From Chlorokybus atmophyticus (lineage: Eukaryota; Plantae; Mesostigma and Chlorokybus algae): a DNA stretch of 64,000 nucleotides. Below are positions 1 through 52,046 of this stretch, piece by piece (the stretch's first letter is position 1; every line of letters begins with the position of its first letter). The notes beneath the pieces were generated by a model, which did no database searches, was not told the DNA's origin, and was given only the letters and a program-made list of their open reading frames with translations. Location: assembly GCA_009103225.1 (NCBI GenBank), contig RHPI01000401.1, positions 149,455 to 213,454 on the forward strand, read 5' to 3'. A program made the translations under genes and the position numbers.

Positions 1-428
1 CAAGCTTGCAAGCAACCTGCTCACCTTTCAACAGCTAAAATCAACTGGCAAACAGCACAGCAGAAGTGCAAGTGTCCTGGCACCACAGCAAGTGAGCAAC
101 CCAAGCTGTTGACTGTCAACAGAGACTGTCATGCAAGCAAGCAAGCATCCAAGCTTGCAAGCAACCTGCTCACCTTTCAACAGCTGAAATCAACTGGCAA
201 ACAGCACAGCAGAAGTGCAAGTGTCCTGGCACCACAGCAAGTGAGCAACCCAAGCTGTTGACTGTCAACAGAGACTGTCATGCAAGCAAGCAAGCATCCA
301 AGCTTGCAAGCAACCTGCTCACCTTTCAACAGCTGAAATCAACTGGCAAACAGCACAGCAGAAGTGCAAGTGTCCTGGCACCACAGCAAGTGAGCAACCC
401 AAGCTGTCGACTGTCAACAGGGACTGTC
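1..428. repeat. 149-bp tandem repeat, ~2.9 copies, running off the window start
   Basis: CAAGCTTGCAAGCAACC restarts at 1, 150 and 299; each unit carries two GACTGTC motifs. Confidence 0.95.
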
Positions 429-748
429 GGACCAGTGCCTTACATAAACAACCGCACAAGCCGCACAAGCGTTGTGAGTTCGCACAAGCCACACAAGCCG
501 CACAAGTAGCGCAACAATGCAACTCGCCAAGAGAGCGACGCGGCTGTCGGTAAGTTAGGGTTGAACTCGCCTAGGAATTGACGGCTGTCTGTGGGTTAGG
601 GTTGGCGGCGTACACAAGCGTTGCAAGACCTTTGGCATGGTTGTTGTTGTTGTTGAGCAAAGATTGGGGGTGAAGGGTTTGGTTCAGGGTGCTGTTGGGT
701 AGGCGTCGACAGTCTCTTGGCACGGTGGACAGTCTCAGGCAGTACACC

Positions 749-3700
749 ATGGCTCGAAGGAGGTCGTCCACAGCGCCGCAGTTTATATGGGGCTGCCTTT
801 ACTGTATGAACAACGTGCATGCTGGTCACCGTAATGCAGACGGCCAACTTGGCATGGGAGAGACCAAGCCCACGAAAATCGCACAGCACTGGAACGGTGC
901 TCTGTGCCGAATGATGCGCGTGCTCAGCAATAAGGGAGGGAGGGAGGACAAGGCTACACTCGAAAAGTTGGCAGAGGAAATCCAGCAATCCATCAGGGTA
1001 CGAACCCTCAGGCATTCTTGATCCAAGTTCTTGCAACATCCTGCCTGGACTGTCAATGATGTGCCTTGCGCGTGCGTACAGCGCATTGGCTCATGGTGCA
1101 GATACCTGACAGCCGTTGCTTGAATCCTGCGCATATCGGTTGTACTTGACAGCCGTTGCTTGAATCCTGCGCATATCGGTTGTAATACGAGTGCAACCGT
1201 CGTGTTCTTGGACTACTTGAAGTTTCGTGACATGTTTGAACGCACAATGCAACTCACCAGCAGCGGCGTGCTGCAGGATGAGCAACTGCCCCCTTACCCC
1301 AATCCCACAGTCCCAAACTTGAAGCACTGCAAGATGGCAGACATCAAGGCTATTCCAGGATATGTGAGTTGCTGAATTCGCACAGCAGCAATGAAACCAT
1401 ACTGCAACATGCGTACTAACCCTGCCATGTTTCAGACCAAAGAACTATACGAAGAAATGCAACAGCTGGCGGCTATGCATACATGGACACGCAGAGCAAC
1501 ACGATCTCGAGGAGTAGGAAGATCAAGAGGAGCAGGAGTAGCAGGAGAACCACAGGATGAGGACGAGGACGAGGACGAGGACGAGGACAAGGACGAGGAC
1601 AAGGAGGGTGCGACACCCAGTCCACCGAAGCGGAAACCCTCAAGGCGTCGCCAAGCCGCAGCAGTGGATTATGCAGCGGAATTCGCCAGTGCTCTTGAAG
1701 AGATGAACAAATTCCAGATGAAACGCTACCCCTCAACAGGTTCCAAAGCGCCACCCAAACTTTCTGCTGACTACTTGAGGGTGAGAACATATTATGACAG
1801 CCTATGCCAATGTAATGGTCTGTGTTTATCTTTGCGCTAGAGTCTGATGGTTACTTATCACTGCATTAAACAGACTGACCGGGAGATACCAAACCTCAAG
1901 CTCATCCATCGTAGCGCTGGAGACAAGCACCAGCTGTGGAGACTGGATAATGTGGAGGATGCAAGAGCATCCACACGCATCCCAGTCAACGAGCAGTTCA
2001 AGTATCTTACGCACAACTGGTTGATCAAGGACTCAACCATCACTGGTGCTGGACTGGGACTGTTTGCCTGCGAAGACATTCCAAACGGTACGTGCACGTG
2101 TGTGCGTGTGTATCTTTGTGTGCATGTCTCTCTGTGTACTCGCGGATCACTCATGACTTGTGCGCATCTGTGCAGAGGCTTACCTGTTGCCATATGACGG
2201 CAAATGGTTCAAGCAACAGGAGATGGAGGAGGTCTTGCATCGTTACCAGCAAATCAGCGACATCCGACACCACCGGCGATATCACGTCAACCTGTTTCCA
2301 CCAGATACACCAAGCCAATATCAGGTTGTCATCGACGGGCACCCCCGCACTGGCTGTGTAGCGGCTTACATCAATTCCGCACATGGGCACACTCAGCCCA
2401 ACGTCATGTTCTACTCGGACTTCGATGACGTAGGCCACCCAGCTGTCACTGTGTATGCGACTAGGGACATCAAGGCAGGGGAGGAGCTACTCTTGGACTA
2501 CACCCCTTTCCCTGCGCCACCAGACGGGCAGACAGACCAAGTAAGTGTGATTGCATTGCTGCATGCCCAGTTTGCATGCCTTGTTAGTGCGACTGTCAAT
2601 GCGAGACTGTCAATGACTCCACAACTGTGACACTGGAAGCTAACTTGCCTTCTTTGCTGGCAGACCCAACTGTGGCAAACGGAGGATGCGGCGCAGAGGC
2701 TTGCGAGAAGTTGGAAGTTGACCACGGAGGACGCTATGTGGTTGCTTACCAGCAAGCCACCAAGGCAGCTGGGCGAGAGTGACTTCGCATATTCCATGCG
2801 TTTGGTCCAGCGTGTCTTCAGCATGCCCAATGCGGACGCAAAGACAAGAATGGTGAGTTGTACTGACAGTCTTCCAACAATGACAGTCTCTTCGACAGTC
2901 TTATCGACAGTCTGTTGTTTTGCATTCCTGTCGCAGTGCACTTGCATGCACTGTGACATGTATGCTAACAACCAAGATCACGTGCATGTGTCAACAGATA
3001 GATTCTGAAGCCCATATTCAGCGTCAAATATCTGTTCATTTCTGTAAAGCGGTTTATGATGCTGCCTACGAAATGAAAGAGGCCGCAAACAGACAAGTCG
3101 ACGCCCTAAAACAAGTCATTAGGGAGTTAGACCTACGGATAGAACAAGAGAACGTGAGGGTACGTCAGCATGTGGTGCACCTTTCACTTCACACATCTGC
3201 TTAAACTGTTACCTGTTTTTGCAGGAAAAGGTCGCTGGTATCCAGAGAAAGACTGCCGAGATGCACAAAACTCGGACAGCAGCTATTGCTACCAGAGAGG
3301 GGGCTCTCACCAGGCAGGCGACAGCATTGGCACTGAAGGGGGAGGACTGGGAAAAGGATTGGGAGAGAAAGATCCGGGGTATGCTGCAGAAGGGCTTCAA
3401 GGAGTCCAGAAAGGAATGGCTTGACGAACTCAAGCGGGACATTGTGCGTACACTTGTAAAAGAGCAGAGCGAAGCTGACACACGGGCGGAGGCACAAGCT
3501 GCAGCATCTTTATTGGTGGCGATCAACAACCCTGATACTCCCCATTCACACGACGATCATCTCCATCAGTTGAGAGTGCCCTTGCACCCCGCACCTCCAC
3601 CACTGAAGACCTGGCTGGAGAGACAAGCTGAGCATGAAAATCCTCCACCTGACACTCCACCTCCCCACAGTCCTAAGGACAGTCCACCTTATGACAGTCG

Positions 3701-5951
3701 CGCGGACAGTCCACCAGCCGACAGTCCACCTCACCACAGTCCACCTCACGACAGTCTCCATGACAGTCCCCGTCCATCTGCCAAGAGAAAGAGAGAGAGA
3801 ACAAGTGCCCCCATGTCTACACCCCCAGCTGAGAAGAAACGTCCCCTTCAGCCAGACACTCCTGCACGGCCAACTCCACCAGCTGTGCGGCCACAAGCTG
3901 AAGAGGAGGCTCTAGCAGCAGCGCGTGATACAATTGAAGGTTTCAAGAAGGCCCACGAGGAGCACCGCAAGGCCGTCAATGACGCATCGAAATTGAGCGA
4001 GGAAGTGGCAAACGCTGTGGAGATTTCTGCAGAACAGCTGTCATTCGCCCTCGGGCTTACAAGACAAGCATTGGTGAGAATAATTGCATCGCGTACAGTC
4101 TTTGTGGAAGAAGGGGGGGGGGGGCTTTGATAATCTGTTGTGGCCTCTGTACTTGATGTCTATGTGCGACAGCAAGGACAAGAGCGCGTTCTTGCAACTC
4201 GTGACAACCTGCAGACCAGCCTAGTCAGTGTGAACGAGGCGCGCAAGCAGTATTACCAGCGTACTCTTGACCTTGAAGTAGCGGAGTCGCAGCAACAGGT
4301 TGCAATCCTTCGCAAGGAGTTACAGGAGACGCAACAGAGGGCTGCAGATGCCAACGCTGAGGTCGCCCGGGTGCGCAAGGAGTTGGAGGAGACGATAAAG
4401 ACAGCATCAAGAACAAATGATGAGTTCAACCTACTCTTAGCCGAGCTGCGCAAGAGGTTCCAGGAGTCGGAGCAGAGGGCTGGGGCATCAGATGCTGTTA
4501 TTGCCAAGCTGCGCAATGATTTGGAGGAGACGGAGCAGAGGGCTGCATTAACCGATGCTGAGGTCAACAATGTGCGCAAGGATTTGGAGCATGCGGAGCA
4601 GAGGGCTGCAGCTTCCAACTCTGAGGTCGCCAAGCTACAAAAGGAATTGGCGGAGTTGCAGCAGAGGGCTGCCGCTTCCAACTCTCAGGTGGACAACCTG
4701 CGCAAGGAGAGGGAGGAGTTGCAGCAGAGGGCTGCAACCACCGATGCTGAGGTCGCCAAACTGCAAGAGGAGTTGGCTACAGCACTTGAAGCCGCCAAGG
4801 AGCGTGCGGCATCAATCGACGCCCAGATTCGCGGCCTCGAATTGCAAAACTTTGATTTGCAATCGCGCATGCTGGCAATGGCCTCCAGCTCCTCTGCGGG
4901 CGCCAAGATTGGGGAAGAGATGGAGAGTTCTCGGCAGCGCATTCGCCAGCTGGAGCAGGAGGTAGCACAGCAAGCGGCGAGGCAGTCAGCATCAGAGGCC
5001 GTTGGAGGGGCTGTCGATGCAGCGGCTGTCGATGCCGCGACAAGAAGAGCCAATGAAGCAGAGCGGCAGCTGGCAGAGGCGCAAACCCGCTATCAAGAGT
5101 TGGAGCAGAGGCTGGCTGCAGTGCCTTCAACATCAGAGGCTGTCGGAGGGGCTATCGACCCATGCGTTGACGAAAAGCTGAATGAAGCGCTAGCAGGTGC
5201 AGAAGCTTTAGACAAGCAGGTGAGAGACCTCAAAGAACAGCTGGACAAGCAGGTGGCAGATCACAGAGCACAGCTCCAGCAGGTAGCACAGGATCGTGTG
5301 CAGTACCTCGTCGGCAGAATCAGGGAGTGGGCGCGTGAGGTCTCCAACCAATTTTTTGCTCTGCGAAACTACGAACGTACAATAGTGTTGGGCCGTTTGC
5401 CAAACACTCAGCTCTTTGACGATTGGCCACAAAGATTTCGGGAGGACCCAGTCAAATGGCCGGGTATCTTCATACGGCGTGCAGCTCAAATCAGGCAGGC
5501 GTGGCAGCAATCACAACGGAGTGCCATTCCATTCACTGGCTTTCAACAAGGTGCCAGTGGGTTCTGGGACTTCTACAGGAACGCCGAGTCGCACTACACT
5601 GGCATCTTGCAGGAACCCAAAATCACAAGGCGCGCTACCCTAATTTCCATGTTTGACGTAATGGTTGTCATGCTATCAACGTTTGTGCACCACCTCCGTG
5701 AACTTGACGAAGGGATGGCTTCACTTCGAGGACCAGCGGCAGCGCCATTGTATCAGCTACAGCGTCCAATGGACTATGCCGCTGCATGGGCGTGGTTGCA
5801 AACCCCCGCAGGTGTATCAGCCCTCAGCAGCTACCGCGCTCAGTGCTCCATACCAAGACCTCCTCGTCCTCCTCCTCCTCCTCCTCCTCCTGCTGCTGGT
5901 GCTGCTGCTGGTCCTCCTCGTCCTCCACCTCCTCCTCCTGATGCTGGTTGA
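749..5951 (+). CDS. SET-domain plus coiled-coil protein, nine exons, ~1468 aa; frameshifted in this copy by a 40-bp duplication in exon 2
   Basis: Exons 749-997, 1102-1363, 1436-1780, 1841-2087, 2176-2540, 2664-2852, 2998-3159, 3225-4073, 4173-5951. All introns are GT-AG and phase-consistent once the duplication is removed, and several have CTAAC branch points. SET motifs: STITGAGLGLFACEDIPNG, AAYINSA, PNV, VYATRDIKAGEELLLDY. Confidence 0.82.
1107..1186. repeat. 40-bp tandem duplication inside exon 2 of the SET gene
   Basis: TGACAGCCGTTGCTTGAATCCTGCGCATATCGGTTGTA starts at 1107 and 1147. Confidence 0.95.
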
Positions 5952-5971
5952 TGTTTCCCTGGTTTATAGCT

Positions 5972-6960
5972 TTAGTGTAAGTTGCCTAGCAGTTGGCCTT
6001 TGCGCGCTGCAAGTAGATCTGCTGGTACGCTTGACCCTTCCTTGTGTACATAATCTGTGAAATGTACAAGTGTGTTACTCACAGTAACCAATGCGTGCTT
6101 AGTAATGCCTTGTGTAATGCCTTGTGCCAAAAACACACACTGATAGTGTTGTTACCCGACAGTCCTAGGGACAGCCGACTGTCCATGGGACTGTCAAGGA
6201 ACAACACTGATGAGACAAGTGATGCGTACCTGCCTCAGCCTCGCCTGCTTTGTAGTACATGATGTGCCTGTCGTAAAACATACGCGCAACCTCAGTTGTC
6301 GGCTGCTCTTGCCATCTGCCTTGATCAACTTGCTGCCAGTTGAGCTTCCTCTTGACCGCAATAGGTGACACCTGTTGGTTGCGACAGTCCTTATTGACCA
6401 CCCACCGTGGTAGGCCTTGGCGAGCACTCGCTGATCTAGGAGCAGGCTTCAGGTAGTCAACCAACATGTTGCCTTCATCGTCAACTTGAGGCTGTCGAAC
6501 AATAACAATCCATAGCGGTGGATCATCAGATACAGGTGCTGGTGGGTCAGTTGGCACGCGAAAGTCAAAGACCGACTTCTTCTCATCCTCATGTCTCACA
6601 AGCAGCACATCCCCGGTTTCAGGCCATACTGGCAGAGGTATATCAGCTGCTCGCAATCGCAGCTCTGGGTTGCTGAAATCGTAAGCCAGCATGTAGGGGA
6701 GCAGCCTTGGTCTCTCCGTCAGCATCCACACTTTGCGCAGCAGCTGGTGGCCTCGGACAAGAATGTTGGTGTTTTCCAAACGCCCCACATGCAAGGCACC
6801 GGAGTCTGCGTCCATGCATTGATTTCCAGCAGCATCTTTTTGCAGGCTGTAGCGGTTGACAGCAATGTACACATGGCACTCGGTGTGAAAGAACATGAAG
6901 ATTTTGTTGACGATGGCTGGCCTGTTTCCATCCAGCATCACAGCATCCTTGCAGTCGCGC
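5972..6960 (-). CDS. Second copy of the last two transposase exons (6960-6230 and 6054-5972), empty-site version without the Copia
   Basis: 6016-6980 closely matches 11475-12438 with scattered SNPs and a small indel. The last exon reads ..YVHKEGSSVPADLLAARKGQLLGNLH* with TAA at 5974-5972. Confidence 0.85.
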
Positions 6961-6980
6961 CTGTGTGTGAGAGAGAGAGA

Positions 6981-7119
6981 NNNNNNNNNNNNNNNNNNNN
7001 NNNNNNNNNNNNNNNNNNNNNNNNNNNNNNNNNNNNNNNNNNNNNNNNNNNNNNNNNNNNNNNNNNNNNNNNNNNNNNNNNNNNNNNNNNNNNNNNNNNN
7101 NNNNNNNNNNNNNNNNNNN
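6981..7119. other. Assembly gap (139 N)
   Basis: N run following a (GA)n microsatellite. Confidence 1.
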
Positions 7120-10100
7120 GTGTTGCAGTACTGGAACTCCACCTCCTTCCTTGTGACTCTGTCACGCACAAAGTGATGCATGACATCAATGTGCTTCGTC
7201 CTTGCCGAGGCGATAGGGTGCTTCAACAACTTGATGGCTCCTTGGTTGTCACAGTTGATGACGATGCACGCCATGGGGTGCTTCAAGTCTGCCATGAGCT
7301 TGCAAAGCCAGAGTGCCTCCTTCACTGCTGCTGCCGCTGCCATGTACTCAGCCTCTGATGTAGATGCTGCTGTTGTTGGCTGCAGCCTGCTGTTCCAGCT
7401 CACCACGCCTCCGTTCAGCTTGAAGACGTAGCCTGTAGTGGACCTCCTGCTGTTGAGGTCACCAGCAAAGTCCGAGTCGCAGTAGCCCTCCAACTCAGTG
7501 CTCCCGCTCCCAAACTTGATGCCAACTGTTGCGCTCCCAGCAACATAGCGTAGTACTCCCTTTGCTGCTCTCCAGTGCTCCATGCTCGGTGCAGACATGT
7601 AGCGAGCAAGTACTCCCACAGCATGTGCAACATCGGGACGTGTGCACACTGCCAGATAGAGCATGCTGCCTACCAGCTCACCATATGGATACTGAGCCTT
7701 GTCGAGTACCTCCTCAACCTTTGCCTTGATGAGGGCAGTGCCAAGTGCCAACGGTGTGGTCTTGGTCTTCGCTTCAGTGAGCCCAAACTTGGTGACGAGT
7801 CTTCTCACCATCTGCTCCTGACTGATCTTGATTGTGCGAGCCGCCCTGTCGCGCTCAATCACCATGCCAAGGAACCACTTGGCCTCTCCAAGATCACGAA
7901 CTGAGAATGCTTGCTGTAGAGCAAGTTTTGTCTCCTGCAGGTGGTGCACCTGCCTGGCGACGATGATGATGTCATCAACATACACGAGCAGCCAGACCTT
8001 GTTGTCTGCATTGATGAAGAGCCTAGGGTCTGCAGAGGATGCGGTGAAGCCAAGTGCCTCCAGCTCCTTGGTGAGCTTGATGTGCCACATACGCGGTGCC
8101 TGTCGCAGCCCGTACAGTGCCTTGATCAGCTTGCACGCTGTGCCTCTCTCCCCTTCTTCATATCCAGGTGGTTGCTCGATGAAGATCTCCTCCTCCAGCT
8201 CTCCGTAGAGGAAGGCAGTCTTCACATCCAGGTGATGCAGCTCTAGGTCTTCAGCAGCAACCATAGCTAGCAGTGCACGGAAGGTGGTATGCTTACTTGC
8301 AGGTGCAAACACTTCGTTGAAGTCCACACCTTCCTGCTGCAAGAAGCCCTTTGCCACCAGTCTTGCCTTGTAGCGCTCAATGTTGCCCTGACCATCACGC
8401 TTCACCTTGAAGACCCATTTCACTGGAATGGTCTTCACTCCTTGCGGTAACTGCTCCAGTGACCAAGTGTTGTTGGCATGGAGTGACGCAATCTCCTCGT
8501 CCATAGCACGCTGCCATTGCTCCGCATCTGGTGCTAACAATGCCTCCTCGTAGGTGCTTGGCTCCTCATTCTGCACACTGGCGACGTGTGCCTTGTGTAA
8601 GAAGTCAGGTGCCTTTCTCTCCCTCACTGGGTATCTCCGAGCTGCGTGCTCCTGCTGTTGGTACGGCTCCTCTTGGCCTGCTACAGCTGAGTCCTGCTCA
8701 CCCTTGTTATTGATGATGGCCTTGCCTGTAGCCTCCACTGTTTCAGGATGCTCCGGCTGTGCTTCATCTTCAGGAAAGAAGCCTGCTTCTGGTTGTGATA
8801 ATCCCTCGTGGAAAACCACCTCTCTGCTCACAATGATCTTCTGAGTGTCCTCGAGCAAGATCCTGTAAGCCTTGGAACCCGGTTCATAGCCAACGAAGAT
8901 GCCCTTCTTGCTGACCGGCTCCAGCTTGTGCCTGAGCTGTTTAGGCACTAGTGCATATGCCGTGCATCCAAACACACGCATACCACTCACATCTGGTGTG
9001 GCTCCATAGAAGTGCTCCCACGGAGTCTTCTGCTCTGAGCTCACCGGAGACCTGTTGCGGATGTAGTTGGCAGTGAGTACCGCCTCCTTCCACAGACTGT
9101 CTTCCATCTTTGTGTCGTTGAGCATGGCTCGAACACGCTCCAAGAGTGTCCTGTTGAGGCGTTCAGCTGCTCCATTCTGCTGCGGTGTGTAGGGTGCAGT
9201 TGTCTCGTGGCGTATGCCCTTGCTGGCGAAGAACTCCTTCAACTCCTTGTTGATGTACTCCCCTCCTCGATCACTCCTCATTGCCTTCATCTTGTTGCCA
9301 GACTGGGTCTCCAACAAGGCCACAACTGTGCGCACAGCTCCAGCAACTTCTGACTTGAGCGTCAATGGAAAGATGATGGACAGCTTGCTGTAGTCGTCGA
9401 GGAATGTAGCAAAGTACCTGGCCCCTCCCTTCGCCACAATGCGCATAGGGCCACAGACATCCATGTGCACAAGCTCGCAAGGATGCTGACTGCTAGAAGA
9501 GGATGATGGGAATGGCATAGCATGCTGCTTTGCAACCAGGCATGGTTCACAAAGTGCACCTGATGCTGTCTTGAGTTCTTCTGTGCTGAGATGGATGCCC
9601 TTGACCATCTTCTCAGCGACAAGGCGAGTGAGGTTGACGTAGCTGAGATGCCCGAACCTTCGATGCCACAATGTTGGCGACTCCTTGTCCTTCACCACCA
9701 TGGCTTGAATGTCTCTGTCTTGAGGCTGCTCCACGTGGTAGAGCCCTCCCGGATCAGCGATTCCAACCATGTGCACGACCCCATCAAGGATGACTGAGCA
9801 GCCACCCTTCCGAAATAGGATCTCCGCGCCTAAGCGCTCCGCAACCCTCACAGAGAATAGACTCGCAATAGCCTTAGGAACATGCAGGACGTTGCGTAAC
9901 AACACCTCGCGTAGTGTGTTACCAACCTTGCACTGGAGTCGTACGTTGCCAACTCCCTCAGCCACCAGTACTTCGCCACCGAAGCCCGCCACCTTGATTG
10001 TGGACGTCAGCTTCCTGTAGCCCTCCATCACCTCCTTGTTTGGTGTGAGATGCCGATCGCAGCCAGAGTCCACCACCCAGAAAGCTGTGCCCGCCCTCGA

Positions 10101-10922
10101 ACTGGATGCAGTGAAGGCGACATGTTTCTCCTTGTGTTGGTGCTCGTTGCCGCTGTTGCTGGTGCTTGCTCTAGGTTGCCCCTGTTGTTTCTTCCTACAG
10201 TCCTTCACAATGTGCCCCTTCCAACCACACCAGTGGCATGTGAGGTCTTTGTGACGAGGATTGCCTGGCTTGTTGCCCTTGTACTTCTCTTCATGGTTGC
10301 TCTTCTTTGCGTGCTTGCCGGTGTAGAAGGCGACGGCATCCGCTTGCTCGTCCTTCTTCACAACCCTCTGCTCCACGGTGAGCAGCTTCGGTAGCACATC
10401 GTCCAACGTCAACTCCGATGATGACGTCTCCAGCAGGGTTGCGACGACCTCGTACTCTGCTGGTAGCCCTGCAAAAATGGCCAGCACTACCTCCGTCTCC
10501 CCCATGTTGTGGCCGACATTGATGAGATCCGCCCACAGCTCTCTCGCGCGCGCAACATACTTTGTGATGGGTTCGGCTGCCTCCTTTCTGAGTGCGCTGA
10601 GCTGCTTGCGTAGATGCAACTTTCTGGCATTGTTCTTGGCTCTGAAAACGGCTGATAGCTTTTCCCAAGCTTGTCTACCATCTTCACATGCAGTGAGCAT
10701 GGGAAAGTGATGCGGTTTGCTGTTCAACACAAGCAAAGAGTGTGCTTCTGCTGAATGCTCTGACCACACAGTGTTTGCTCCTGGTGGTGGTGGTGGTGCC
10801 TTCGGATCAACGTACTTCCAGACCTTCTTGTGGATGAGCAAGGCCTTCATCTCCACGCACCATGTGTTGTAGTTGTCAGTGTCCAGCTTTGCAATCTGCC
10901 CCTTGTCGTAGGTCGCCTCCAT
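7120..10922 (-). CDS. Copia Gag-Pol polyprotein (Gag, zinc knuckle, protease, integrase, RT, RNase H), cut off by the gap
   Basis: CHWCGWKGHIVKDC; WVVDSGCDRH; HMDVCGP..RSDRGGEY..NGAAERLNR; HLDVKTAFL; LVYVDDII; GYCDSDFAGD. No stops from the ATG at 10922 to the gap. Confidence 0.97.
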
Positions 10923-11036
10923 CTTTGTCGAGCCTGCCTTTCTTGCAGTTGACACCCAAGGCTCTGCTACCAACAAGCTACCGTAGTGTAGAACTACTAT
11001 GCACACAAGCTAGTCTCACACTCCTCAAGCGTAGTG

Positions 11037-11049
11037 TGGGCCCATAACC
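11037..11049 (-). other. Primer-binding site GGTTATGGGCCCA (internal half of initiator tRNA-Met)
   Basis: Directly abuts the LTR end ..CAACA; complementary to the anticodon-arm TGGGCCCATAACC of plant tRNA-iMet. Confidence 0.9.
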
Positions 11050-11474
11050 TGTTGAAGGACTAGCATGCACATGTAGCTGAGGCAAGCATGGATACACACG
11101 GACAGAGCTACCGCCACCAGAGCATACACAAGTCACATCACATTCATCTATTACAAGTTGTCCGCTGGTTCTTATACCAGCCAGTTACACACACGTCTAC
11201 GTTTGCAAGCACTGCGTAAGCTATACTCAGCCTTTTGACGCGCTCTAAGCTGCGTTGTCTTTCTTACAACCAGAGCTTTCCAACAAGCTCTCACACGCCT
11301 AATATGAGTAAGTATACGCGGAGATACGAAGCAGTTAGTAAGGCTCCAGTCTGGAGTCCGGAGTCTGGTCCGACGATGCCATCTTGCTAAGTCCGGACCT
11401 AATGCTCGTCCTTACGACCTTCTACTCCTGTATGGAGGGTCGATGCTGATCGTATGTAGGAATGACTCTCAACA
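11050..11474 (-). repeat. 5' LTR of the Copia element (425 bp)
   Basis: Inverted ends TGTTGA/TCAACA. Host transposase sequence resumes exactly at 11475 (GATCT..). Confidence 0.9.
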
Positions 11475-14400
11475 GATCTGCTGGTACGCTTGACCCTTCC
11501 TTGTGTACATAACCTGTGAAATGTACAAGTGTGTTACTCACAGTAACCAATGCGTGCTTAGTAATGCCTTGTGTAATGCCTTGTGCCAAAAACACACTGA
11601 TAGTGTTGTTACCCGACAGTCCTATGGACAGCCGACTGTCCATGGGACTGTCAAGGAACAACACTGATGAGACAAGTAATGCGTACCTGCCTCAGCCTCG
11701 CCTGCTTTGTAGTACATGATGTGCCTGTCGTAAAACATACGCACAACCTCAGTTGTCGGCTGCTCTTGCCATCTGCCTTGATCAACTTGCTGCCAGTTGA
11801 GCTTCCTCTTGACCGCAATGGGTGACACCTTCTGGTTGCGACAGTCCTTATTGACCACCCACCGTGGTAGGCCTTGGCGAGCACTCGCTAATCTAGGAGC
11901 AGGCTTCAGGTAGTCAACCAACATGTTGCCTTCATTGTCAACTTGAGGCTGTCGAACAATAACAATCCATGGCTGTGGATCATCAGATACAGGTGCTGGT
12001 GGGTCAGTTGGCAAGCGAAAGTCAAAGACCGACTTCTTCTCATCCTCATGTCTCACAAGCAGCACATTCCCGGTTTCAGGCCATACTGGTAGAGGTATAT
12101 CAGCTGCTCGCAATCGCAGCTCTGGGTTGCTGAAATTGTAAGCCAGCATGTAGGGGAGCAGTCTTGGTCTCTCCGTCAGCATCCACACTTTGCGCAGCAG
12201 CTGGTGGCCTCGGACAAGAATGTTGGTGTTTTCCAAACGCCCCACATGCAAGGCACCGGAATCTGCGTCCATGCATTGATTTTCAGCAGCATCTTTTTGC
12301 AGGCTGTAGCGGTTGACAGCAATGTACACATGGCACTCGGTATGAAAGAACATGAAGATTTTGTTGACAATGGCTGGCCTGTTTCCATCCAGCATCACAG
12401 CATCCTTGCAGTCGCGCCTGTGTGTGAGAGAGAGAGAGAATATCTGTCAGTCGTTGTTTGACAGTGTCAGCATTGACAGTCTGCACGGCTGTCAATGCTG
12501 GGACTGTAGATATCAGAGATAGAGACCATATAACGGACAGTCGCACCAGTGACATTTTGTGTGACAGTCGTTGGTGGGACTGTCGATGACAACTGTGCTG
12601 CATTCATAATCAAGATATAAAGCACACCTGTATACCAGGCCGTCCCTCATATAGGCTTTGTAGTCGCGCACTGTTCGCCGTGTCGGGGTGCCAATGGCAA
12701 TGTTCTCTTGTGCACAGATGCTCTCGAACAAGCCGTCGCTCGCGACATAATGAGTGTTGCCTCGCCCAATCACTATGCCTTGTTCTTTGATGCGCCTGGA
12801 GTGTGCCAGGGTGGGGTATGCTTCCACAAGCGCCCAAATATCCTCTGCGTGCTTGATTGTGGCGACCTCATACCAGGTGGACCCGTTGAATTCTGTTTTG
12901 CAGATTGTAGACAGTATGTTGCCAACTCTATGGCAGAGCAGCAGGCCTGAACGCTGATCGTCACGCATGACGCCAAATAGTCGCACAAACCATCTCCTGA
13001 CAGAACGTTTTATAAAGCTGATCTCGTAATCCTTGCAGTTGGACGGGGTGTTGACATACAGCTTCACAGCGCGCTCAACGGCGTAGCACCAGAACACGTC
13101 ATGGCTGCCGTGTCTACGGATGTTGTCAAGCAGGTGGCAAGTTCCCGCAATGTGCTCCAAAATCTTTTTATTGGTGCCAAAGCAGATCTCGTTGTTGACC
13201 TTCCAGTACCTGAGCAATGCATCCGCGAGCTCCAGGCGGTCTGAATTCCAACCAAAGCGCCGTGAGATGTCAAAGAATAAGCGGAAGATCATGTGGAGAC
13301 ACATGACGAGATCTCTCCTTTCTTCGCTGAGCAGCTTGTGAAAAACATAGGGCACACCAAATTGCACGAAGAACTGGTGCTCCTGCGCCTTCCACCATCC
13401 AAGGCGACTGCTGAGGCCGTGTGGCCAGCGATTACCATTCTTCACCTCTCTTGGTCTTGCATTTCTCATCACGGACAGCCGACTGTCGATGTCAGCCTTG
13501 CTGACCTGCTCGTCCCCACCATCCATCAGAGTGCAGGCTGTCAAGCTCTTGGCCAGTCCTTCGGCTAGCGTGTGCATGGTATTAAAGACCATGTCCTGAC
13601 ATGGGTCAAACTTGTACATCCGCCAAAGCCTCCACAAAAGCGACAGCCCGTTGACGCCATACTTCTTGGCCTTTTCTTTCTTGCGATTGGGATCTTCAGT
13701 GCTTTCAACTTCATCGGCCAGCTGGTATGTGGCCTCTGCAGTTCTTTTGGCAAATGGATGGCGACTGTGGTAGCGGCTGCTAGCATAGTGGAAGTCGGTC
13801 CTGTTGCTCCGAGTTTCTTCAACAACATCGTTGCCAGTGCTGGGATCTTGAGTGACTTTTTTGGTGACAGTAGAGTGCCGGATATGAGTTGCCAGCAGGC
13901 AACAAGCCCTGCAACCGCATAAGCCGCCATTCTTGAATTGCCCCATCTCGCTTTGGGCTGGATTGTCACCGGCAATGTTCATGACCATGGCTCTCAGGAA
14001 AATCTTATCACCTGCAAACCATTGGAGGCATCAGGACTCATTGCTTCGTGCGCAGCAGCGCGCGTACGCGACTATGCACGGGACACAGCCGCGACTGTCG
14101 ATTTGGACTGTCGGACATGGGACCTGGAATGGACAGTCGCATGGACAGCCTTGCTCAAGCGAACTCATACAAGCATAGCAGTGGAGTGCATAAGATTGAC
14201 AGTCGCAGTTGACAGCGCAAAGACAGTCCTGAGCTTAAACAAGCACAGCAATGCATTCCATACATATGACAGTCGCAAGAACAGCTGCGTGCGCGTGGCA
14301 CTGCTAAACAGATGCATGCGAGCGTACCAGCCAATCGATGAGGGAGCTTGATGTCCACCTGGCTGGAGTCCAAACCGTAGTGCGTGGGGAAGCCCATGGC

Positions 14401-16558
14401 GTACAAATCCTCCAACTCATCCACCATGGGCTTCATGAACGGGTTCAGACAGTCCTTGTCCGCGTCGAGTAGCTCGTCAACTGGGACAAATACTACTGGC
14501 ATGATGGAAGACGCCTGTGAGCTGACGCGCTTGCCTCCATTGAGCACAACGACGTTGATGACAAGGGTGCTCCGCTTTGTAGTGGATGCGCAGCTGAAAC
14601 CATCACTGTGCATGAGCCCAATGTTGCGTGGGTCTCCAGTACACTGCTGCGCAGCCTCTTCATTCTCATAGGAGCACTCGCAATGCCATTTCTGATAACC
14701 ATCCTTGTGCTGCGACATGTCAATGTCATAATTGTAGCGTCCACAGTCGCATTTGTTTGGCAGAGGGATGGTCTTCGTGCAGTCCCAAAAAGCAGTCAGT
14801 TCTCTCCACTTGCTGCCATGCCAAGCTTCCCATTGAGGAGCTGGGGGATGGTTTGCTGGCACGTTGAACCAGGTGTCTTTGTCTCGCCAAGCAGCAAGGT
14901 TGTCATATGCGATCGAAGGAACTTGCAGCCACGGACCGAGTCTTGGACCAATGGGCGTGTATAAAAAATCTATACACTCCTTGCGCGTGCGCCCGCATTC
15001 GCCTCCGCACGGCTGTTCCCACAAGCGTTTCAGAATCTTATGGCGACTGTCGTCTTGGCAGCTGTCCTCGCAGTCACCGTAGCCTGATGGATAGGCATCT
15101 GGAAAGAGATAATTGCATCGTGTGCATGCTGTATATCTCTGTGACTCTGGCATTCCGATGGAAGTCAGCAATGCATCGACGGCCGTGATGTCAGCCGGCT
15201 CGGAGGGGTTGCGCTGGCCGAGCAAGGCATGGAGATCGTTACGGAGCTGACTGTGGTTGTAGGCGGGATCCTTGGCCAGCTGTACAATGGAGTCTTCGGC
15301 ACCAAAAACAGTCTTCAGCACGTTGTTGATCAGTGATTGCTGTGCATGAGAGTCCTCCAAGTCTGTCAGCAACGACATGAACTTGTCCAGCATTTTTTGC
15401 GTGGGTGTTTTCGAGGACTGTTGTTGACGAGAAATGCCGGGTTGAGGTGCATCACATTGCGCTGAAGGCATTGGCGGTGGGTGCATACTTTCTTGCGCTG
15501 CCTCGTCCAGTCGCATGTGAGCCAATGAAGTCTCCAACTCAACCCACTGCCCAATCGCAACATACGACTGTCAATGTAGGTAGCATGGATGGCAATGCTG
15601 AAAGTGCGCGCATGGTGGGCTACGGACGCGCATGGTGGCGCTACGGACAGTCGCAGGCATGCAGCATTCCCAGACATGGGCAGCTACAGTACGACAACTG
15701 TGCGCGCAACAAGTTCATTGCTCACCTTGCCAAGGCACCTTGGGCAAGAGCAAATTGTGTAGGACACTTCTTGCTGTTTTGGATCATCATCATTGCTACC
15801 AAGAGGCTTAAACATGTCTTTAATTGGCATGTCAACAGTCGGCTGTCGATCCGACTGATGCTGAAGTGGAGCAGTTGCGGCGCTGCTGGAGCTGGGCATG
15901 TTGACAGTCGGCTGTGGATCAGCCTGATGTTGAAGTGGAGCTGTCGCGGCACTGCTGGTGCTGGCAACATCGAAAATCGGCTGTCCACCTGACTGTTCCC
16001 TTTCGTGAAGTGTAGCTGCCGCTTCATTGCTGGTGCCGGCCAAATTGACAGTCGGCTGTCCAAGCACGGGATGCCTGAAGCAATCTTGCAGTCAGTGACA
16101 CACCACGTGCAATGGCACCATCGGCTGACAGTGGAGATCACAGCAAGGCAGCAAGTGCACTAAGGTGATCGACAGTCTCTTAGCATGGTGAAGGCTGTTT
16201 ATTTACATCATTCCTATTGTTAGTGGCATGCATACTGTCATGTATACTCAATGAAGAGCAGTACGCCAGGTACAACAGCGTGGTCAACTTACTGCTCATG
16301 CTGCTGGCTGATGTCGCTATGCTGCCCGAGCATGGCCGGATCTTCATGGGCGGGCTGAGGGTTGACAGCCTCAATGGGCTGGTCATCAACCACATGGTGC
16401 TGGACGACATCAGCCTGCTCCGGTAAGGGTAGGGAACTCTGTTGGCTGCGAAGGCGGTTGTTCCTACGAAAGGTGTTCCTCTTACTGGCTGGTTGCAAGT
16501 TGATTCCCAGCTTAGTACTAATGTCCTTGGCGAAGCGGACAGCCTTTTTACTGGCCAT
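11475..16558 (-). CDS. CACTA/En-Spm Tnp2-like DDE transposase, six exons, ~1350 aa; last exon interrupted by the Copia
   Basis: Exons 16558-16293, 16074-15726, 15567-14328, 14011-12628, 12417-11687, 11513-11475 (plus 44 bp seen at 6015-5972); all phases are consistent. Motifs: CSCPRC, DPRNIGLMHSDGF, PMVDELEDLY, NIAGDNPA, TMHTLAEG, WKAQEH, HLLDNIRRHGSHDVFWCYAVER. Confidence 0.9.
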
Positions 16559-16685
16559 TGGTACAGCTAGATTCTGCCAGCAAAGACACCGCCAACGAGG
16601 CCGCCGCCACCAACCAGAGCGCCGCCGCTCCCTCTCTGAGCGCAACCCTATTACGCAGACCATGTAGGTAGGAACCCTATTGTTG

Positions 16686-17690
16686 GCCCATGCACGTGAC
16701 TCGACAGTCGCACCATGCACGGTGCGACTGTCAAGTCTTCACTCCATGTAATTAGAATATGCCGACCGTTCGATACGCTTGAATCGACGGTCAGATGAGG
16801 CTGGGCTACGTTGTATCCCAGCGTCCGTGCAATCTTAGCTATGACGTGTATCATATACGAGAACATACCCAACACACTATCTTATGGCAATGGGAGGGAT
16901 GTGCTGGTTGGCCCTGTCAATGCATTCACTTGTCCGAATGCATGCACTAACGGGGTCAATGAGCACATCCTCCACTGCCATGATTTGCAGATCATTCTTT
17001 TTTCATCCGTTGCGCCGGTAGTGGCCAGTAGTGGCCCATGCATGGTGCGACTGCCCAGTCTTCACTCCATGTAATTACATAATATGCCGAACCGGAATCA
17101 TTTACGTGAGGACCAACCTCGAACCATGCATGGTTCAGCAATCATGTGGTACCGACCATGCATGGTCCCTACCCGCGGATACTCGGATTAGGAAGAGCCT
17201 GGTTGGGTTAAAGACCATGAATGGTCTGCAATCTTATGAAAATGTGGACCTGTATGAGCTTTCATGAGCCGCAGACCATGCACGGTGCGTGCTGCTTGTC
17301 AAAAGTGACCGATAAGCTCAGCGTGCACCAGCAATGGTCCGCCCAATGATTCCGGTTCGGACCAGCCACTTTGATGTTATCTACCGGAACATATATGGTC
17401 AGGCATTGATGTAGTCCGGACCATGCATGGTCCGTAGACCCATTGACAGTCGGACCGGGACAATGCCTGGTCCGGCTGCGAACCATTCATGGTCCGGACT
17501 TTCACGGCATATCGGACCGGTATATCACCTGGTCCGGCCGCGGACCATGTATGGTGCGCAACTGCTCGCCAGGTATCGGGGCCCCGAAAGGACCATGGAC
17601 GGTCCGTCCCCCGGGGACCAGGCACTCGTGGTCCTCGGGGCACGGACCATGTATGGCCCGCGGGGTCCGTGCAAGGACCATACATGGTCC
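16686..17690. repeat. Subterminal array of ~14 imperfect palindromes GACCATGCATGGTC
   Basis: Copies at about 17123, 17153, 17213, 17274, 17419, 17481, 17544, 17591, 17645 and 17676, plus degenerate ones. A ~45-bp segment is also repeated at 16722 and 17045. Confidence 0.9.
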
Positions 17691-17707
17691 CCGAACGTCA
17701 ATCCGTG

Positions 17708-18385
17708 TGAATGCAAGCACAGGTGTCACTCTCTTCCTTATGAATTACGGGCAACATCCATTGACACCGTTGACGGCATGGACACCGCGACGACATGACG
17801 TGCGTGTGGAGGCAGCTAATGACTTTCTTACAAAGTGCGCGGACATTAACAAGGCAGCTAGGGAGGCGCTATTGGTGGCGCAAAATCGGCAGAAGCAGTA
17901 CGCGGACGCGCATCGCCGACACCTCACTTTTCAGGAAGGCGACATAGTGTTACTCTCCGCGAAGCACGTACAGGTGCGTACGGGAGTTCGCAAGCTGAAT
18001 GAACGCTGGTTGGGACCGTTTAAGGTCAGCAAAGTTATCTCGGACGTGGCGTACAAGCTGGAGCTACCCGACACCATGCGTGTGCACCCCGTTTTTCACG
18101 TCTCCCTTCTGAAAGCATATCGAGGACAACCGCCAGAAAGGGTCGCCCCCCGAAGTTGGCACGGATGGTGAACCCGAGTGGGAGGTAGAAGACATCCTTG
18201 GTGAGAAGTTTGTGCATGGTGTACGCAAGTTCTTAGTGAATGGAAGGGCTATCCGTCGCATGAAGCATCCCGGGAGCCAGAGGCACACTTGACTAATGCT
18301 CAAGACGTTGTGCGTGACTATCTTGCTCGACGACAACCTCGCGAGCTTCGAGGACGAAGCTCATCTGGGGGGGAAGGAGTGTAAC
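17708..18385 (+). pseudogene. Ty3/Gypsy chromovirus integrase C-terminus (GPY/F motif) plus chromodomain, two frameshifts
   Basis: ASTGVTLFLMNYGQHP..RQKQYAD..RKLNERWLGPFKV..VAYKLELP..VHPVFHVSLLKAY, then EPEWEVEDILG..FLV.WKGY. Polypurine tract GGGGGGGAAGGAG at 18367-18379. Confidence 0.92.
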
Positions 18386-41526: not shown

Positions 41527-42807
41527 ATGGGAGTGCACAGGCTTGACACGGGTGAAGCACGGGTGATGGAGGGCCCGGCCTCACTAAGCATGACACAGAC
41601 CCAGCGCTGCCGAGTGCTGGATGATGAGCGAGAGCTGGAGTTGGGCGGAAAGACCTCCCCGCCCCCTCGCCGGCGCACGCCGCCGCCCTCCCCGCGCCAG
41701 CCTCAGCGACAACAGCAACAGCAGCAGCAGAAGCAGCCGCATTACGCCCTGGAGATGGCGGGCGACCTCGCCTCTGCCGCCGCCGCCTCATTCGCTGTCT
41801 CTCCCTTCATCGCCATCGTAGACAAGAGCATCGTCAGCAATGCCAGCGGTCGCCAGGTACTTGTCGGTAGGCTGTCAATGCACCCTCATTGGATGTAATA
41901 TCACAAGCCCTATGTGAGCAGCGCCATGATGTTGTAGTCTATGAGTGCATTGGAAGCCCTGCTTGTTGATTGCAGCTGATTGTCTGTTGTGCAGGCGTTG
42001 TGGCCTGCATTGGTAACTGGAGCTAAGGACGCTTGCCTGAGACCGCACAAGTTCTTGCGCAGACCGGAGTTCTGGTGGATTGCTGGGCTTTACACGGCAA
42101 CGTAAGCACGCGCCTGTTCGCGGCATTGCCTTCGGCAGCTGTCTGATGGATGAATGTCTCTTGCAGCTACATGGCCGCCAACAGTGTGGACACTTTCTGT
42201 CGGAGGCGCAAGGTGGAACCGACACTCCCCAAGTTTTTGGCCACAACCGGTGTGAACATGCCTTTCTGCATTGCCAAGGACCGCGCCTTTGCAAGACTGT
42301 TTGGGGTGATCGCTGCCAAGGTACAATGCAAGTCTTTTGCACCAGCTGTATATGCGGTCATGGGCTTCTGCAAAACCTTGCTGTGTTGTCTGCATTGAGG
42401 CCAACATGTTGTGTCTGTTGCAGCCGCTGCCACTGCCATCTTACGGGCTCTTTGCCGTGCGCGACTCCATGACCATCGCAGCTTCCTTCAGTGCCCCGCA
42501 GCACGTGTCCGGCTGGCTTCAGCAGAAGGGTGTGAAGCAGCAGCACTCTGACGTGATCGCGCAGCTGCTCTGTCCAGCCATAGTGCAGGTTGTGTCCACG
42601 CCGCTTCATCTGCTCGGCCTGGACCTTTATAACAATGGACAATCGTCGGCGGCTGCGCGCTCTGTCTTTATTCAAAGGGAGTACACTAAGAGTGTGCTGG
42701 CGCGAGTGGCGCGTATCGGTCCGGCTTTTGGTATTGGTGGCGTTGTCAACAAGCGGCTGAGAGACATGACACGGAGTTCCATTGGGGCAGCACCCCCTTT
42801 GAGGTAG
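41527..42807 (+). CDS. Conserved hypothetical multi-pass membrane protein, probably mitochondrial
   Basis: Exons 41527-41856, 41995-42101, 42167-42320, 42424-42807, phase-consistent. AVSPFIAIVDKSIVSNASG, YTATYMAANSVD, IAKDRAFARLFG, LFAVRDSMTIAASF, STPLHLLGLDLYN, RIGPAFGIGGVVN. The start codon is uncertain. Confidence 0.8.
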
Positions 42808-43826
42808 ATTGAAAGAAGTGTCCAATTTTCATGCAGGGGGCCTGTTCAACTGCAGTTGAACACAGCTCCATGCCATCCAGTTTTGTTTATAATTTTGTTT
42901 TAGCTATTCCGGATGTTCACTCATTTTATGGCCGTGCCAAGTTTGTGACCATTGCATACGTCTATGGCATTGGCTCTTCTGTCAGCTATCTGTATGCCAA
43001 GAGCAGTATTCTCGTGGGGCATGTGTCAGTACATGTCAAGGCGCCTAGGTTCGGTTTGTTCAACCAACCAACGGTCAAACACAACGACATTGCCAGGATT
43101 ACCCTGCAGGACAGGAGCCAATGTCACAAAGCTAGTCAGGTTGGAACAATCAGGCCCGGAAGGTGTGCACGAACCAATGCAGCACCTATATGTAATGCTT
43201 GCCATATTTGCACACTGTGACATGAGGCATGGGCGCGGAGATAGTGATGTAAAGAGCAATGGCAGTGTTATACTTCTGGTAGCAAGCCCACCAGACCCAA
43301 GCAGGCTGGTGAGGAAGTAAGTCCCGATTGGTTGTAAGGCGTCATATGCACAAGTAGTAAGATGATGTGCAGCAACACCACCTTAGATCAAGTTTGCGTT
43401 CTGGCTTCAATCAGAACTCACTAACCCAAAGAAGCATGAATGCGTACTCAAAACCATACAATACTTCACCGGTCTTGAAATGCTGCAACTATACTGCAAC
43501 AACGTCTTCAATTTTATGTGCACACGCTAGTTTATACCGCTCTAGAACAGGGCACGAGATGATAAACCACTGAATCCACTGACCTTGAAAACTCAGCAAC
43601 GGTGCTGCACATCAAGGTCCCACTTGACTTTATGTCTGCATGTAGACACTGTGCATAGACAGCACGATGCCTTGACATGCGCTTGGCGTTTGCAAGTTGC
43701 ACGCAGAGCACTGCACGCGACAACTTGTGCCAAACCTCCCCCGCCAGCCGTCATGGTCGCAATGACTGTACACCAGCGCTACAAGGTCAAAACGGAACCC
43801 CCACAAACTACACAGCCACTAAGCCC

Positions 43827-45708
43827 TTATCGCGCAGGCGCATTCTTGGACATGGCAATGAACGTCACCACGAGTCCCGTCAGCACAACCCAGCCAATGA
43901 TGTCATACTTCAGTGTGGACTTCTTTTTGCGCCCCTGCACATTGACCCGAATGGCACTCTCAGCTTTTGAATCACTCGCAGCCCTATACCATGCTGACAC
44001 TGGCACACAACAACAGCGTGCTAACAGCAACGTACCCTTCCACCAGCTCCGCTCAACAGACTCCCAAAGCCCCCCGCGCCAGCACCCTCACCGCCGTCCC
44101 CGAGCTGCAAATGATGCTGTTGCTGCTGCTGTTGCTGCTGCGCAAGAGCCCGTTGTATCTCCATGTGTAGGGCAGGTGCCTATAAACAAGAACGACAGCT
44201 CAGTGAGGAGCAGCAGTAAACGCAATGCACCAAGGGAGGGCGATGTTTCCTGTTTCATGCAAGCAACACGCTGGGAAGACAATTACGACAATATACACCA
44301 CTTGTATGCCTTGCAGACGACTTCACTTGCACCTCACCTGTGCACAGGAGTCCAGTGACTTCTTGTAAAGCTCGTTGGATGGATCCTGTCGGACAGTTGC
44401 GAGGCAGTCAGCATTCACAAACTCGCAAGCAAGCATGCAAACAGGAGGGCAGCTGATGGCGAGGTGATCAGCGCACGCAGCAAGCACCCATGCAACCATG
44501 AAACAAGCGTGTATGCCTGCTGCGAGGTGCCAAACAGCGTTACCTTCTCCAGCGCCTTTGCAAAGCAGTTGCGCGCTCGCTCAAAATATCTACCAGCCCG
44601 CGACGGCTCCGTGTACATGAAACCCTGCGGGACGGACATCATGTGAGGCGCCTGGCCAATGCTGCTACCTTCTGCCTTGCATGGCTGAGCAATGCAACTA
44701 CATGCCTGCGCTGTTAGGCAGTTGCCCATGCACCACAATGCATCATGCTTGTCGGCCTCAATCTTCAAGGCCTCATCCAACCGCTTCTCCGCCTCTGCAA
44801 CACAAGGATACCACATCAACACATGGACGCAACTTGTAGCACTGGTCTAACTTACAAGTGCACTGTATGCCATGAGTACGACACACAGCCGAGCTACATG
44901 CATGCACCACTTACCTTAAAGATGACATGCATGCAGCAGTGCAGCATTGTGGGGTAGACTTGACGGTTGCTATTATGCAATGCTGGAAAGCAGAAACCAA
45001 GAAAAAAGACTGTCTCATGTTGCGTACCTATAACCAACTCCAGTGCATCGGGTCCCTGCCGAAAATGTGCCAGCTCCAGCAAGGCGCCGCCCCATCTGGT
45101 CAAGTTCTGACCAAAAACAACGAGATAAATGAGTAACATATGCACACAAGCATGATTTGCAGAGACACCAACTGCAGTCAAGCCACACTACCACCTGCAC
45201 TTATCATTACACAAACCGTTGCTTTGGCAGTTTCCCCCATGCGCATTAAATATGTTTCACAGTGCATGTGTGCAATGTGTAGGCTTTCGTCAGGTGATCA
45301 CAAGCCTCCCACTCTTTGGGGGGGGGGGATAGCCACTGACATAGCTTGTGATGAGACAGGTGGGGAGCAGCAAGACAGCAGCAATTGAATTCAACACTGC
45401 ACACAACAACCAGGACAACAACTGCAAGCGAACATGCTTCTGACAGCATCGTCATCACCATCACCAATATCATCATCAACAACACAGACATCATCACCGC
45501 CGGCACGCATGCAAGCAAGCAAACGTGTAACTGTAGAGTACGGACACAGCGCATGTGCATGGCGCTAGTGTGCGCGCAAGGAGACAGACAGCCGGACGAC
45601 ATTCACCTCGGCGTCCTTGTCATTGCGGCGGTACTCCTGCTCCGCCTGCTCGCGCACATGCTCAAAGAATATCAGCCTCTCCAAGTGCTCCCTCGGCAGC
45701 GCCTCCAT
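43827..45708 (-). CDS. TOM20: Plant-type mitochondrial import receptor TOM20
   Basis: LERLIFFEHVR, NLTRWGGALLELAHF, ALWCMGN..GF, DPSNELYKKSL, APALHMEIQR, C-terminal anchor YDIIGWVVLTGLVVTFIAM; seven exons, one GC-AG intron. Confidence 0.95.
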
Positions 45709-46232
45709 CCCAGATCAAGCTACAATCTACCACTCCACAACCACACGTCTCTGGCCACAGCTGAGGCACACTCCACACCACTCGCGTCAAGCGATCCCAA
45801 GACAGCCAAGCCGCTGACAATCACACACGCAGCCCCCGCGTATATCCCCAACAACCCGCACGTCGCCGCCGCCGCCACCGCCGCCGCCGCCACGTCAGAC
45901 CGTGACGGTGGAGCCAAGAAAACCCTAGATAACCAGTACATAACGCTACCTGAGCACGTTGACTGACCTTTGTTCGCCGCTGCTACGCACGTGAACGTGA
46001 CTCACATTTGCAAATCTGCAATAGCGCACCTCATCGAGTAACCCAGCTTGGGTGACGTGATCAGTGCTGCGAACGATTACGATGATCTGGATGACGTAAC
46101 CAGAACTCGTTTGGTGCTATTTTCGGCAACACACAAAAGAAGGCGGCGGCGGTGTCGTCGTCGCTACCCTCCTCACTCATCTCTCGGTGCTGAGGTGAAA
46201 GAGACATATCAGCCGACACACGCACGCGTGCG

Positions 46233-48297: not shown

Positions 48298-48745
48298 CAG
48301 AAAGATACGTGTTGTGGTGAGGTAATTTGTCAGCGGTGAGATAGGCTAGAGCTAGGCTAAGGCAATCTGCATGTATCAGAACCAAGCAGTTGCAGTGTCA
48401 CGACGAACATCACCTTAGAGCAGGTTGGAAACAGTGTTGGTGTGACACATACAAGCACTAACAGGTCATCTGAGATACAGCGATTGAACCACGCACGGAC
48501 AAGGCAGGGTTGCGTGCGTGCATGCATGCATGCGTGCGCGTGTTGCACACGTGCAACTGGTTCGCATCCACAACCATGGCAGGCTTGTGTGTGGTCATCA
48601 GAGCTCCTTCATCTCCAGCATCTATTAGTCGCCCTCTCCGTGCAGTATCTCAACCCGCAATCGAGTATCTATCCCAACAACCAAATGCGCTCGCTCTCAA
48701 ATCTCCTCAACACGTGCTGCGACCTAGTCAATACTCCCAACCATG

Positions 48746-50581: not shown

Positions 50582-50675
50582 CCCGCCACCGCCGCCGCCA
50601 CCACCCACTGACTGAAACTTCCCAAAACAAAATTCCGCGAGTGTTTGTTTGAGCAGGTAGGCGGGGGGCGCCATC

Positions 50676-52009: not shown

Positions 52010-52046
<37 letters not shown>

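Follow-up and report, generated by a model that had tools for sequence, protein, structure and literature searches.

A palindromic heptamer densely arrayed through a putative CACTA-like transposon with a SET-domain gene in the alga Chlorokybus atmophyticus

In a stretch of 64,000 nucleotides from Chlorokybus atmophyticus (assembly GCA_009103225.1, contig RHPI01000401.1, positions 149,455 to 213,454 of the forward strand; hereafter the window), the seven-base palindrome GACWGTC (W stands for A or T) is densely arrayed through the transposable-element sequence that occupies positions 1-17707, and is rare in the remaining 46.3 kb. On our best reading of its sequence, this element is a large CACTA/EnSpm-like DNA transposon that carries, besides a transposase gene, a convergently oriented gene for a SET-coiled-coil protein; its left end lies outside the window. 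The array itself is real and striking. Its role is most readily seen as that of a binding array: we hold it at about even confidence that a dimeric protein recognizes GACWGTC as its specific DNA site, and that its binding serves the element.

Results and discussion

One word marks the element

The window contains 56 copies of GACWGTC, of which 51 fall within 1-17707 and five within 17708-64000; in 100 dinucleotide-preserving shuffles of the whole window there are 9.5 copies on average and 17 at most. A preliminary description of this DNA, made from its letters alone, had put the number at about 50 in the element, with few copies in the other 46 kb or so and a single one in the Copia retrotransposon nested in the element; the exact counts bear this out, the five outside copies being close to the shuffle prediction and the one in the Copia (4354 bp) lying at 9095. 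Because positions 6015-6980 are a second copy of 11474-12437, the four motifs within them (at 6158, 6177, 6189 and 6383) were excluded as homologous repeats; with this overlap and the Copia removed, the non-redundant total is 46 motifs in 12.25 kb, where an order-2 Markov model predicts 3.1 (z = 24.4). In an unbiased scan of all 7-mers, comparing the element with the rest of the window, GACWGTC ranks first (42 vs 5, 30-fold), as it does in the scan against the Markov model, and no 8-mer extension of it is found outside the element within the window; in six control windows of 12 kb, the best non-simple 7-mers reach z-scores of 5-10. When each cluster is counted as a single event, 22 events stand against the 3.1 single motifs expected (P = 3e-12).

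These figures also bear on a neutral origin of the array, in which the word would have been spread by replication slippage, template switching in gap repair and gene conversion, and would persist because the copies are young. Several clusters are in fact tandem arrays (149-bp x2.9, 12-bp x2.7, 15-bp x3.5 and 69-bp x2), and no excess conservation is detectable, either in the 966-bp overlap between the two copies or in 40 listed substitutions (see below). However, the 22 clusters are separate and have unrelated flanks, the selectivity for the full 7-mer with central W is extreme, the control windows never reach a comparable z-score, and the word stands in frame in two different coding repeats, read as DSP in one and PTV in the other; we consider a neutral origin quite improbable.

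Properties of the site

The enrichment is specific for the complete word: the element contains two copies of GACSGTC, none of GACGTC and two of GACNNGTC, and the other NACWGTN palindromes (CAC-, AAC- and TAC-WGT) are at background, as are 6-bp and 8-bp spacings and a central S. Exact and one-mismatch sites stand at 46:56 inside the element and at 5:103 outside. Most of the excess of near misses comes from GGCWGTC/GACWGCC, a symmetric variant present 23 times, at fourfold background density and with about 17 copies in excess; it frequently stands next to an exact site (GACAGCCGACTGTC is an example). Sequence next to the sites is almost uninformative, which shows that they do not derive from a single longer repeat; the exception is a G at position +1, found in 34 of 92 half-sites as compared to 19% after other GTC, and a weak wider consensus, CGACWGTCG, has a CpG at both sides. 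Close neighbors tend to lie 12-15 bp apart, as do 13 of 21 close pairs. The TGACAG site of TALE homeodomains was considered and ruled out: the +1 position holds A, or T where the opposite half is read, in 24 of the 92 half-sites, which is the background frequency.

On the sense strand, the central base is T in 25 copies and A in 21, showing no bias relative to transcription; the signal is thus symmetric, as expected for one that is read in double-stranded DNA. This balance speaks against an RNA-level signal, either a splicing element or hairpins that feed small-RNA pathways, which we judge very improbable. Copies that read GACUGUC can base-pair with those that read GACAGUC in the same strand, intron 4 of the transposase gene folds better than its shuffles (z = -3.7), and one motif, at 15566, overlaps the inferred acceptor of intron 2; but intron 3 of the same gene, with six motifs, folds no better than z = -0.33, the fold of intron 6 in the SET gene is driven by a motif-free hairpin, and eleven copies lie beyond the coding span of both gene models, in promoter, leader and subterminal DNA. 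Two specific forms of this explanation were ruled out: hairpins, for which the fold z-scores are inconsistent (-0.33, -3.7 and -2.4), and a branch-point or splice signal, as the putative CTAAC branch sites in the three SET-gene introns inspected (2, 5 and 6) lie away from the motifs and do not involve them, and as there is no sense-strand bias.

Where the motif sits

Sorted by context, with intron calls based on GT..AG and open-frame models inferred from the sequence, motif density is highest in introns (23 motifs in about 2.0 kb, 11.4/kb), lower in promoter, upstream-array and subterminal DNA (11 in about 2.0 kb, 5.6/kb) and lowest in inferred exons (12 in 8.3 kb, 1.45/kb), as compared to 0.11/kb outside the element (5 in 46.3 kb); the exon density is nevertheless 13 times background (Poisson P = 2e-10). 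The concentration in introns proposed in the preliminary description is thus correct for density, but a considerable part of the array, namely the 12 exonic copies and the 11 in promoter, upstream and subterminal DNA, lies elsewhere. All clusters it had named are present (four motifs in 2865-2912, three in 11615-11652, four in 12475-12584 and six in 14093-14274), as are motifs in the 149-bp repeats, at two per unit. Every intron longer than 120 bp has at least one motif, while the five introns of 57-99 bp have none. In the SET gene, the motifs fall into intron 1 (one), intron 5 (two), intron 6 (four) and exon 8 (six), the introns of 57-99 bp being free of them; in the transposase gene they fall into all five introns (1, 2, 6, 4 and 3, for a total of 16) and into exons (six). 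The coordinates of these and the other features are collected in Table 1.

Eight of the 12 exonic motifs are in frame within two low-complexity coding repeats: in exon 8 of the SET gene they read GAC AGT CNN (Asp-Ser-Pro), and in transposase exon 2, within its 69-bp repeats, they read CCG ACT GTC (Pro-Thr-Val). These tandem repeats lie at 15826-16062; two reading frames are open across the inferred exon 2, which is therefore less securely coding than the remaining exons. Pairs of motifs also precede both start codons, at 708/728 for the ATG at 749 and at 16703/16726 for that at 16558, the latter pair at a distance of about 150 bp. Overall, the motif occupies sequence that is free to vary and is not bound to one regulatory position.

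The pairs just upstream of both start codons are what would be expected if GACWGTC were the site of a host transcription factor, accumulated by the element in the form of promoter and intronic enhancer modules, and the lack of any detected DNA-binding domain encoded by the element (see below) points the same way. Yet the in-frame coding copies and the approximately 16 copies deep in transposase introns exceed the needs of a promoter, and the other 46 kb, with five sites at about the shuffle level, offer no visible host use, which in a single window is a weak test. A host factor is a possibility to be kept in mind, if an unlikely one.

Table 1. Features of the element and of the motif array in the window.
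Feature	Position	Strand	Remarks
149-bp tandem array, 2.9 units	1-447		Cut by window start; upstream of SET gene; pair of GACTGTC 13 bp apart in each unit, six motifs
SET-gene promoter / 5' leader	448-748	+	Motifs 708 and 728, 20-40 bp before ATG at 749
SET gene, inferred nine exons	749-5951	+	Frame-consistent GT..AG models; SET domain in exon 5 (Pfam E = 2e-8)
Six in-frame motifs, exon 8 of SET gene	3678-3768	+	GAC AGT CNN, Asp-Ser-Pro/Leu/Arg; Ser/Pro-rich low-complexity stretch, partly a 15-bp tandem array
Second copy of transposase 3' part	6015-6980	-	Exon 6, intron 5, exon 5 and start of intron 4; 97.7% identical to 11474-12437
Assembly gap	6981-7119		Transposase intron 4 on left side, Copia pol on right side
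Copia-type long terminal repeat (LTR) retrotransposon	7120-11473	-	Gag through integrase to reverse transcriptase/RNase H; 5' LTR at about 11007-11473; 3' end lost in gap
Transposase gene, inferred six exons	11474-16558	-	Putative distant relative of Tnp2/Transposase_21 family
Motif cluster in transposase intron 4	12475-12584		Four motifs and one GGCTGTC; two local hairpin-forming inverted repeats built on them
Densest motif cluster, transposase intron 3	14093-14274		Six exact motifs and one GACAGCC variant
Right subterminal region	16681-17707		Few heptamers (three); array of another palindrome in 14 copies, with core ACCATNNATGGT and full form GGACCATGCATGGTCC
Perfect palindrome, 12-bp arms	16703-16732		GACAGTCGCACC-ATGCAC-GGTGCGACTGTC; two heptamers and one subterminal-type palindrome; about 150 bp upstream of transposase ATG

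The genes and termini of the element

The predicted product of the SET gene has an N-terminus that contains Cys and His; exon 5 then encodes a divergent SET domain and exon 9 a long coiled coil, and the C-terminal part is helical. Of the Pfam SET profile, the match (2178-2540) spans the C-terminal half only; in it, the usual NHSC reads NSAH, while ELLLDY is kept, and the catalytic competence of the predicted domain is uncertain. The transposase is a remote one: in Pfam searches, run exon by exon at E <= 1, its exon 3 matches PF02992 (Transposase_21) with E = 0.02 and 14.5 bits, under the cut-off of 28.6, and four of nine scanned relatives match the same profile at 17-26 bits, also under the cut-off; the matches all point the same way, but each falls short of the curated score. 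Exon 4 has 264 distant representative relatives, the best at 39% identity, and a homologue search of protein collections with the 491-aa core returned no close relative.

The terminus is marked by a palindrome distinct from GACWGTC, ACCATGCATGGT. Its core, ACCATNNATGGT, is found (with at most one mismatch) 14 times in 16712-17688 and 17 times in the whole window, for which shuffling gives a mean of 2.4; such an array of subterminal repeats is a feature of CACTA-type elements. Several of the subterminal palindromes are directly flanked by the heptamer or by GGACC half-sites. The right end of the element reads ...AATCCGTG at about 17707, so that the other strand would read CACGG.... Next to this end, at 17708-18171, stands the C-terminus of a Ty3-type integrase (SH3_Tf2-1, Integrase_p58_C), so the transposon was inserted into an older retrotransposon. 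Further along the window, at 41708-59957, the word CACGCAC is moderately over-represented (32-33 copies against about 7 expected), probably as part of a simple repeat with a 4-bp period.

The interior of the element is interrupted by an assembly gap and by the Copia. The 966 bp at 6015-6980, which keep all four motifs of the homologous stretch, adjoin the gap at 6981; translated from the minus strand, they match transposase exon 5 at 96% identity, and at the gap they end in a (GA)n run, the same run that opens transposase intron 4. With transposase sequence on its left and Copia pol on its right, the gap has discontinuous flanks, and the open reading frame that spans it (6165-11006, 1613 aa) is therefore an artefact. 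The Copia, for which the window contains no second LTR, sits at the equivalent of 6014/6015, between the two convergent genes. The sequence may thus represent one element with a Copia between its genes, plus a scaffolded piece of a second copy; alternatively, 1-6980 and 11474-17707 may be parts of two copies. The notion that 6015-6430 and 11474-11887 are motif-bearing LTRs of the Copia was ruled out, since the repeat runs for 966 bp to the gap and encodes transposase exon 5.

A candidate reader and the case against it

What can be said about protein binding of GACWGTC, about the binder and about the consequences is read from the sequence. The roughly 46 exact copies, together with the excess of about 17 GGCWGTC/GACWGCC variants, would constitute an array for a dimeric protein that binds double-stranded DNA. 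Its sites would take up sequence that is free to change, in the longer introns, both promoters, the upstream tandem array and two low-complexity coding stretches, and specificity for the element as a whole would come from the density of sites, not from single sites, as in VANDAL21 and its protein VANC21. The likely gain for the element would be to keep its own genes active or to recruit a chromatin activity to its own copies, while the separate terminal palindrome would probably serve the transposase.

The idea that the motif is an address label had already been advanced in the preliminary description, and the exact palindrome, the absence of strand bias, the arrays with 12-15 bp spacing and the near-absence from the Copia and from the other 46 kb all agree with it. 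For the reader proposed there, the SET protein with a putative zinc module at its N-terminus, no support was found: exon 1 of the SET gene has no Pfam hit at E <= 1, and a single-sequence AlphaFold model of it, of low confidence (pLDDT, the predicted local distance difference test, 55.8), consists of three helices and has no zinc site.

Several results weigh against the binding-array interpretation. On the side of the protein, Pfam searches at E <= 1 with the exons of both genes, for the part of the element in the window, revealed no DNA-binding domain, and Atlas searches for look-alikes were uninformative, including those with the C-terminal part of the SET protein. The models are too poor for use, that of SET exon 1 as just described and that of transposase exon 3 with a mean pLDDT of 38.5 and helices predicted at residues 54-135. 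On the side of the DNA, local tandem duplication (in the 149-, 15- and 12-bp arrays) supplies part of the motif count, and conservation among copies lends no weight to a selected function. The overlap of 966 bp keeps four of four motifs, for which the probability by chance is P = 0.5; of 178 differences, 40 are listed, and among these a single substitution (16047 G>A) changes a base of a motif, as many as neutral change would produce. The contigs of two runs contain many copies of the element, at 90-99% likeness, which are DNA-like and retain the introns; one contig of the X2 run joins 14018 to 14321, so that at least one copy in the family either lacks 14019-14320, with transposase intron 3 and its six motifs, or has it replaced. 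No copy of the same family was retrieved in homologue searches with transposase exon 4 and with the 135-aa frame of exon 2, in a metagenome scan, or among the representative relatives. Among distant relatives of the transposase, in GCA_022343405.2, the 21-kb locus L001 contains one motif, and neither of the two loci there has a comparable palindrome.

If the array is read by a protein of the element, the SET-coiled-coil protein would itself be a candidate: as a coiled-coil dimer it could recognize the heptamer and write a histone mark on the chromatin of the element. There are two proteins and two classes of motif, the subterminal palindrome being the natural partner of the transposase; the long coiled coil of exon 9 would provide the dimer that a palindrome implies; and the SET domain is real by its Pfam score (Table 1). 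Yet the searches described above show no DNA-binding domain in any exon of the SET gene, no zinc site in the low-confidence model of exon 1 and no informative look-alike for the C-terminal part; the assignment proceeds by elimination alone, and the part of the element upstream of the window may hold further coding sequence. We regard this assignment as rather improbable. In its most elaborate form, which we view with more than ordinary doubt, the element would use two DNA codes, the terminal palindrome being read by the transposase for movement and the interior heptamer by the dimeric SET-coiled-coil protein, which would then place a histone mark on copies of its own family only. If true, the transposon would carry a chromatin writer that is addressed by sequence.

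Relation to known systems

The closest parallel to a binding array of this kind is the anti-silencing system of VANDAL21 in Arabidopsis, where VANC21 binds the motif YAGTATTAY, dense in the introns and intergenic DNA of the element, and where tandem duplication has enlarged the arrays (Hosaka et al. 2017, PMC5735166). The Chlorokybus array resembles it in that a short motif is dense in one transposon family, in introns, intergenic and upstream DNA, with arrays that derive in part from tandem duplication; the motif densities given above for introns and other non-coding DNA (11.4/kb and 5.6/kb) are of the VANC type in this respect. It differs from VANDAL21, which is Mutator-like, in its CACTA-like context, in that its motif is an orientation-free 7-bp palindrome whereas VANC21 motifs have one orientation, in its additional copies in frame in coding repeats, and in being known from sequence alone. 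It also differs in the proteins: the exon matches at E <= 1, for the part of the element in the window, comprise SET, a weak Transposase_21 and other sub-threshold families, with no VANC-like family among them.

In maize En/Spm, which belongs to the CACTA superfamily, TnpA recognizes subterminal motifs. The regulator of Spm is encoded by the element, and as in Spm, the motif described here is family-specific and forms dense clusters; unlike that of Spm, which is confined to the termini, it fills the interior, with only three of 46 copies in the last kilobase, where the terminus has another palindrome. A TnpA-like DNA-binding domain comprises two helix-turn-helix motifs; the model of transposase exon 3 does predict helices, at residues 54-135, but at a confidence too low for comparison. 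In Arabidopsis, TnpA(Spm1), with the motif CCVTCGCAAA, requires dense clusters and binds and demethylates the termini only, and TnpA-like proteins are found only in flowering plants (bioRxiv 10.64898/2026.08.24.746577). The premise of the preliminary description, that the motifs of TnpA and VANC21 are both spread through their own elements, is accordingly sound for VANC, whose effect spreads, but not for TnpA(Spm1), whose clusters are terminal (bioRxiv 10.64898/2026.08.24.746577).

A SET gene as cargo of a DNA transposon has already been described: PMC12730594, citing Kojima and Jurka (2014), attributes SET cargo to Phytophthora transposons of the HarbingerS and MuDR families. These are cut-and-paste transposons with a SET-domain gene, as is the putative transposon described here, but they belong to other superfamilies and another host, and no interior array of motifs is mentioned for them in PMC12730594.

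Conclusions

The word GACWGTC offers a practical annotation marker for this transposon family. It also makes the element a simple test system, with a single word of 7 bp and two candidate proteins, in which to ask how chromatin changes can be targeted by a transposon to itself. To our knowledge, sequence-specific self-recognition of transposons is so far known from flowering plants, where VANC serves Mutator-like elements and TnpA serves Spm. A comparable array, dense and private to its family, in a CACTA-like transposon of an alga from an early branch of the streptophytes would point to an ancient or a repeated origin of address codes of this sort.

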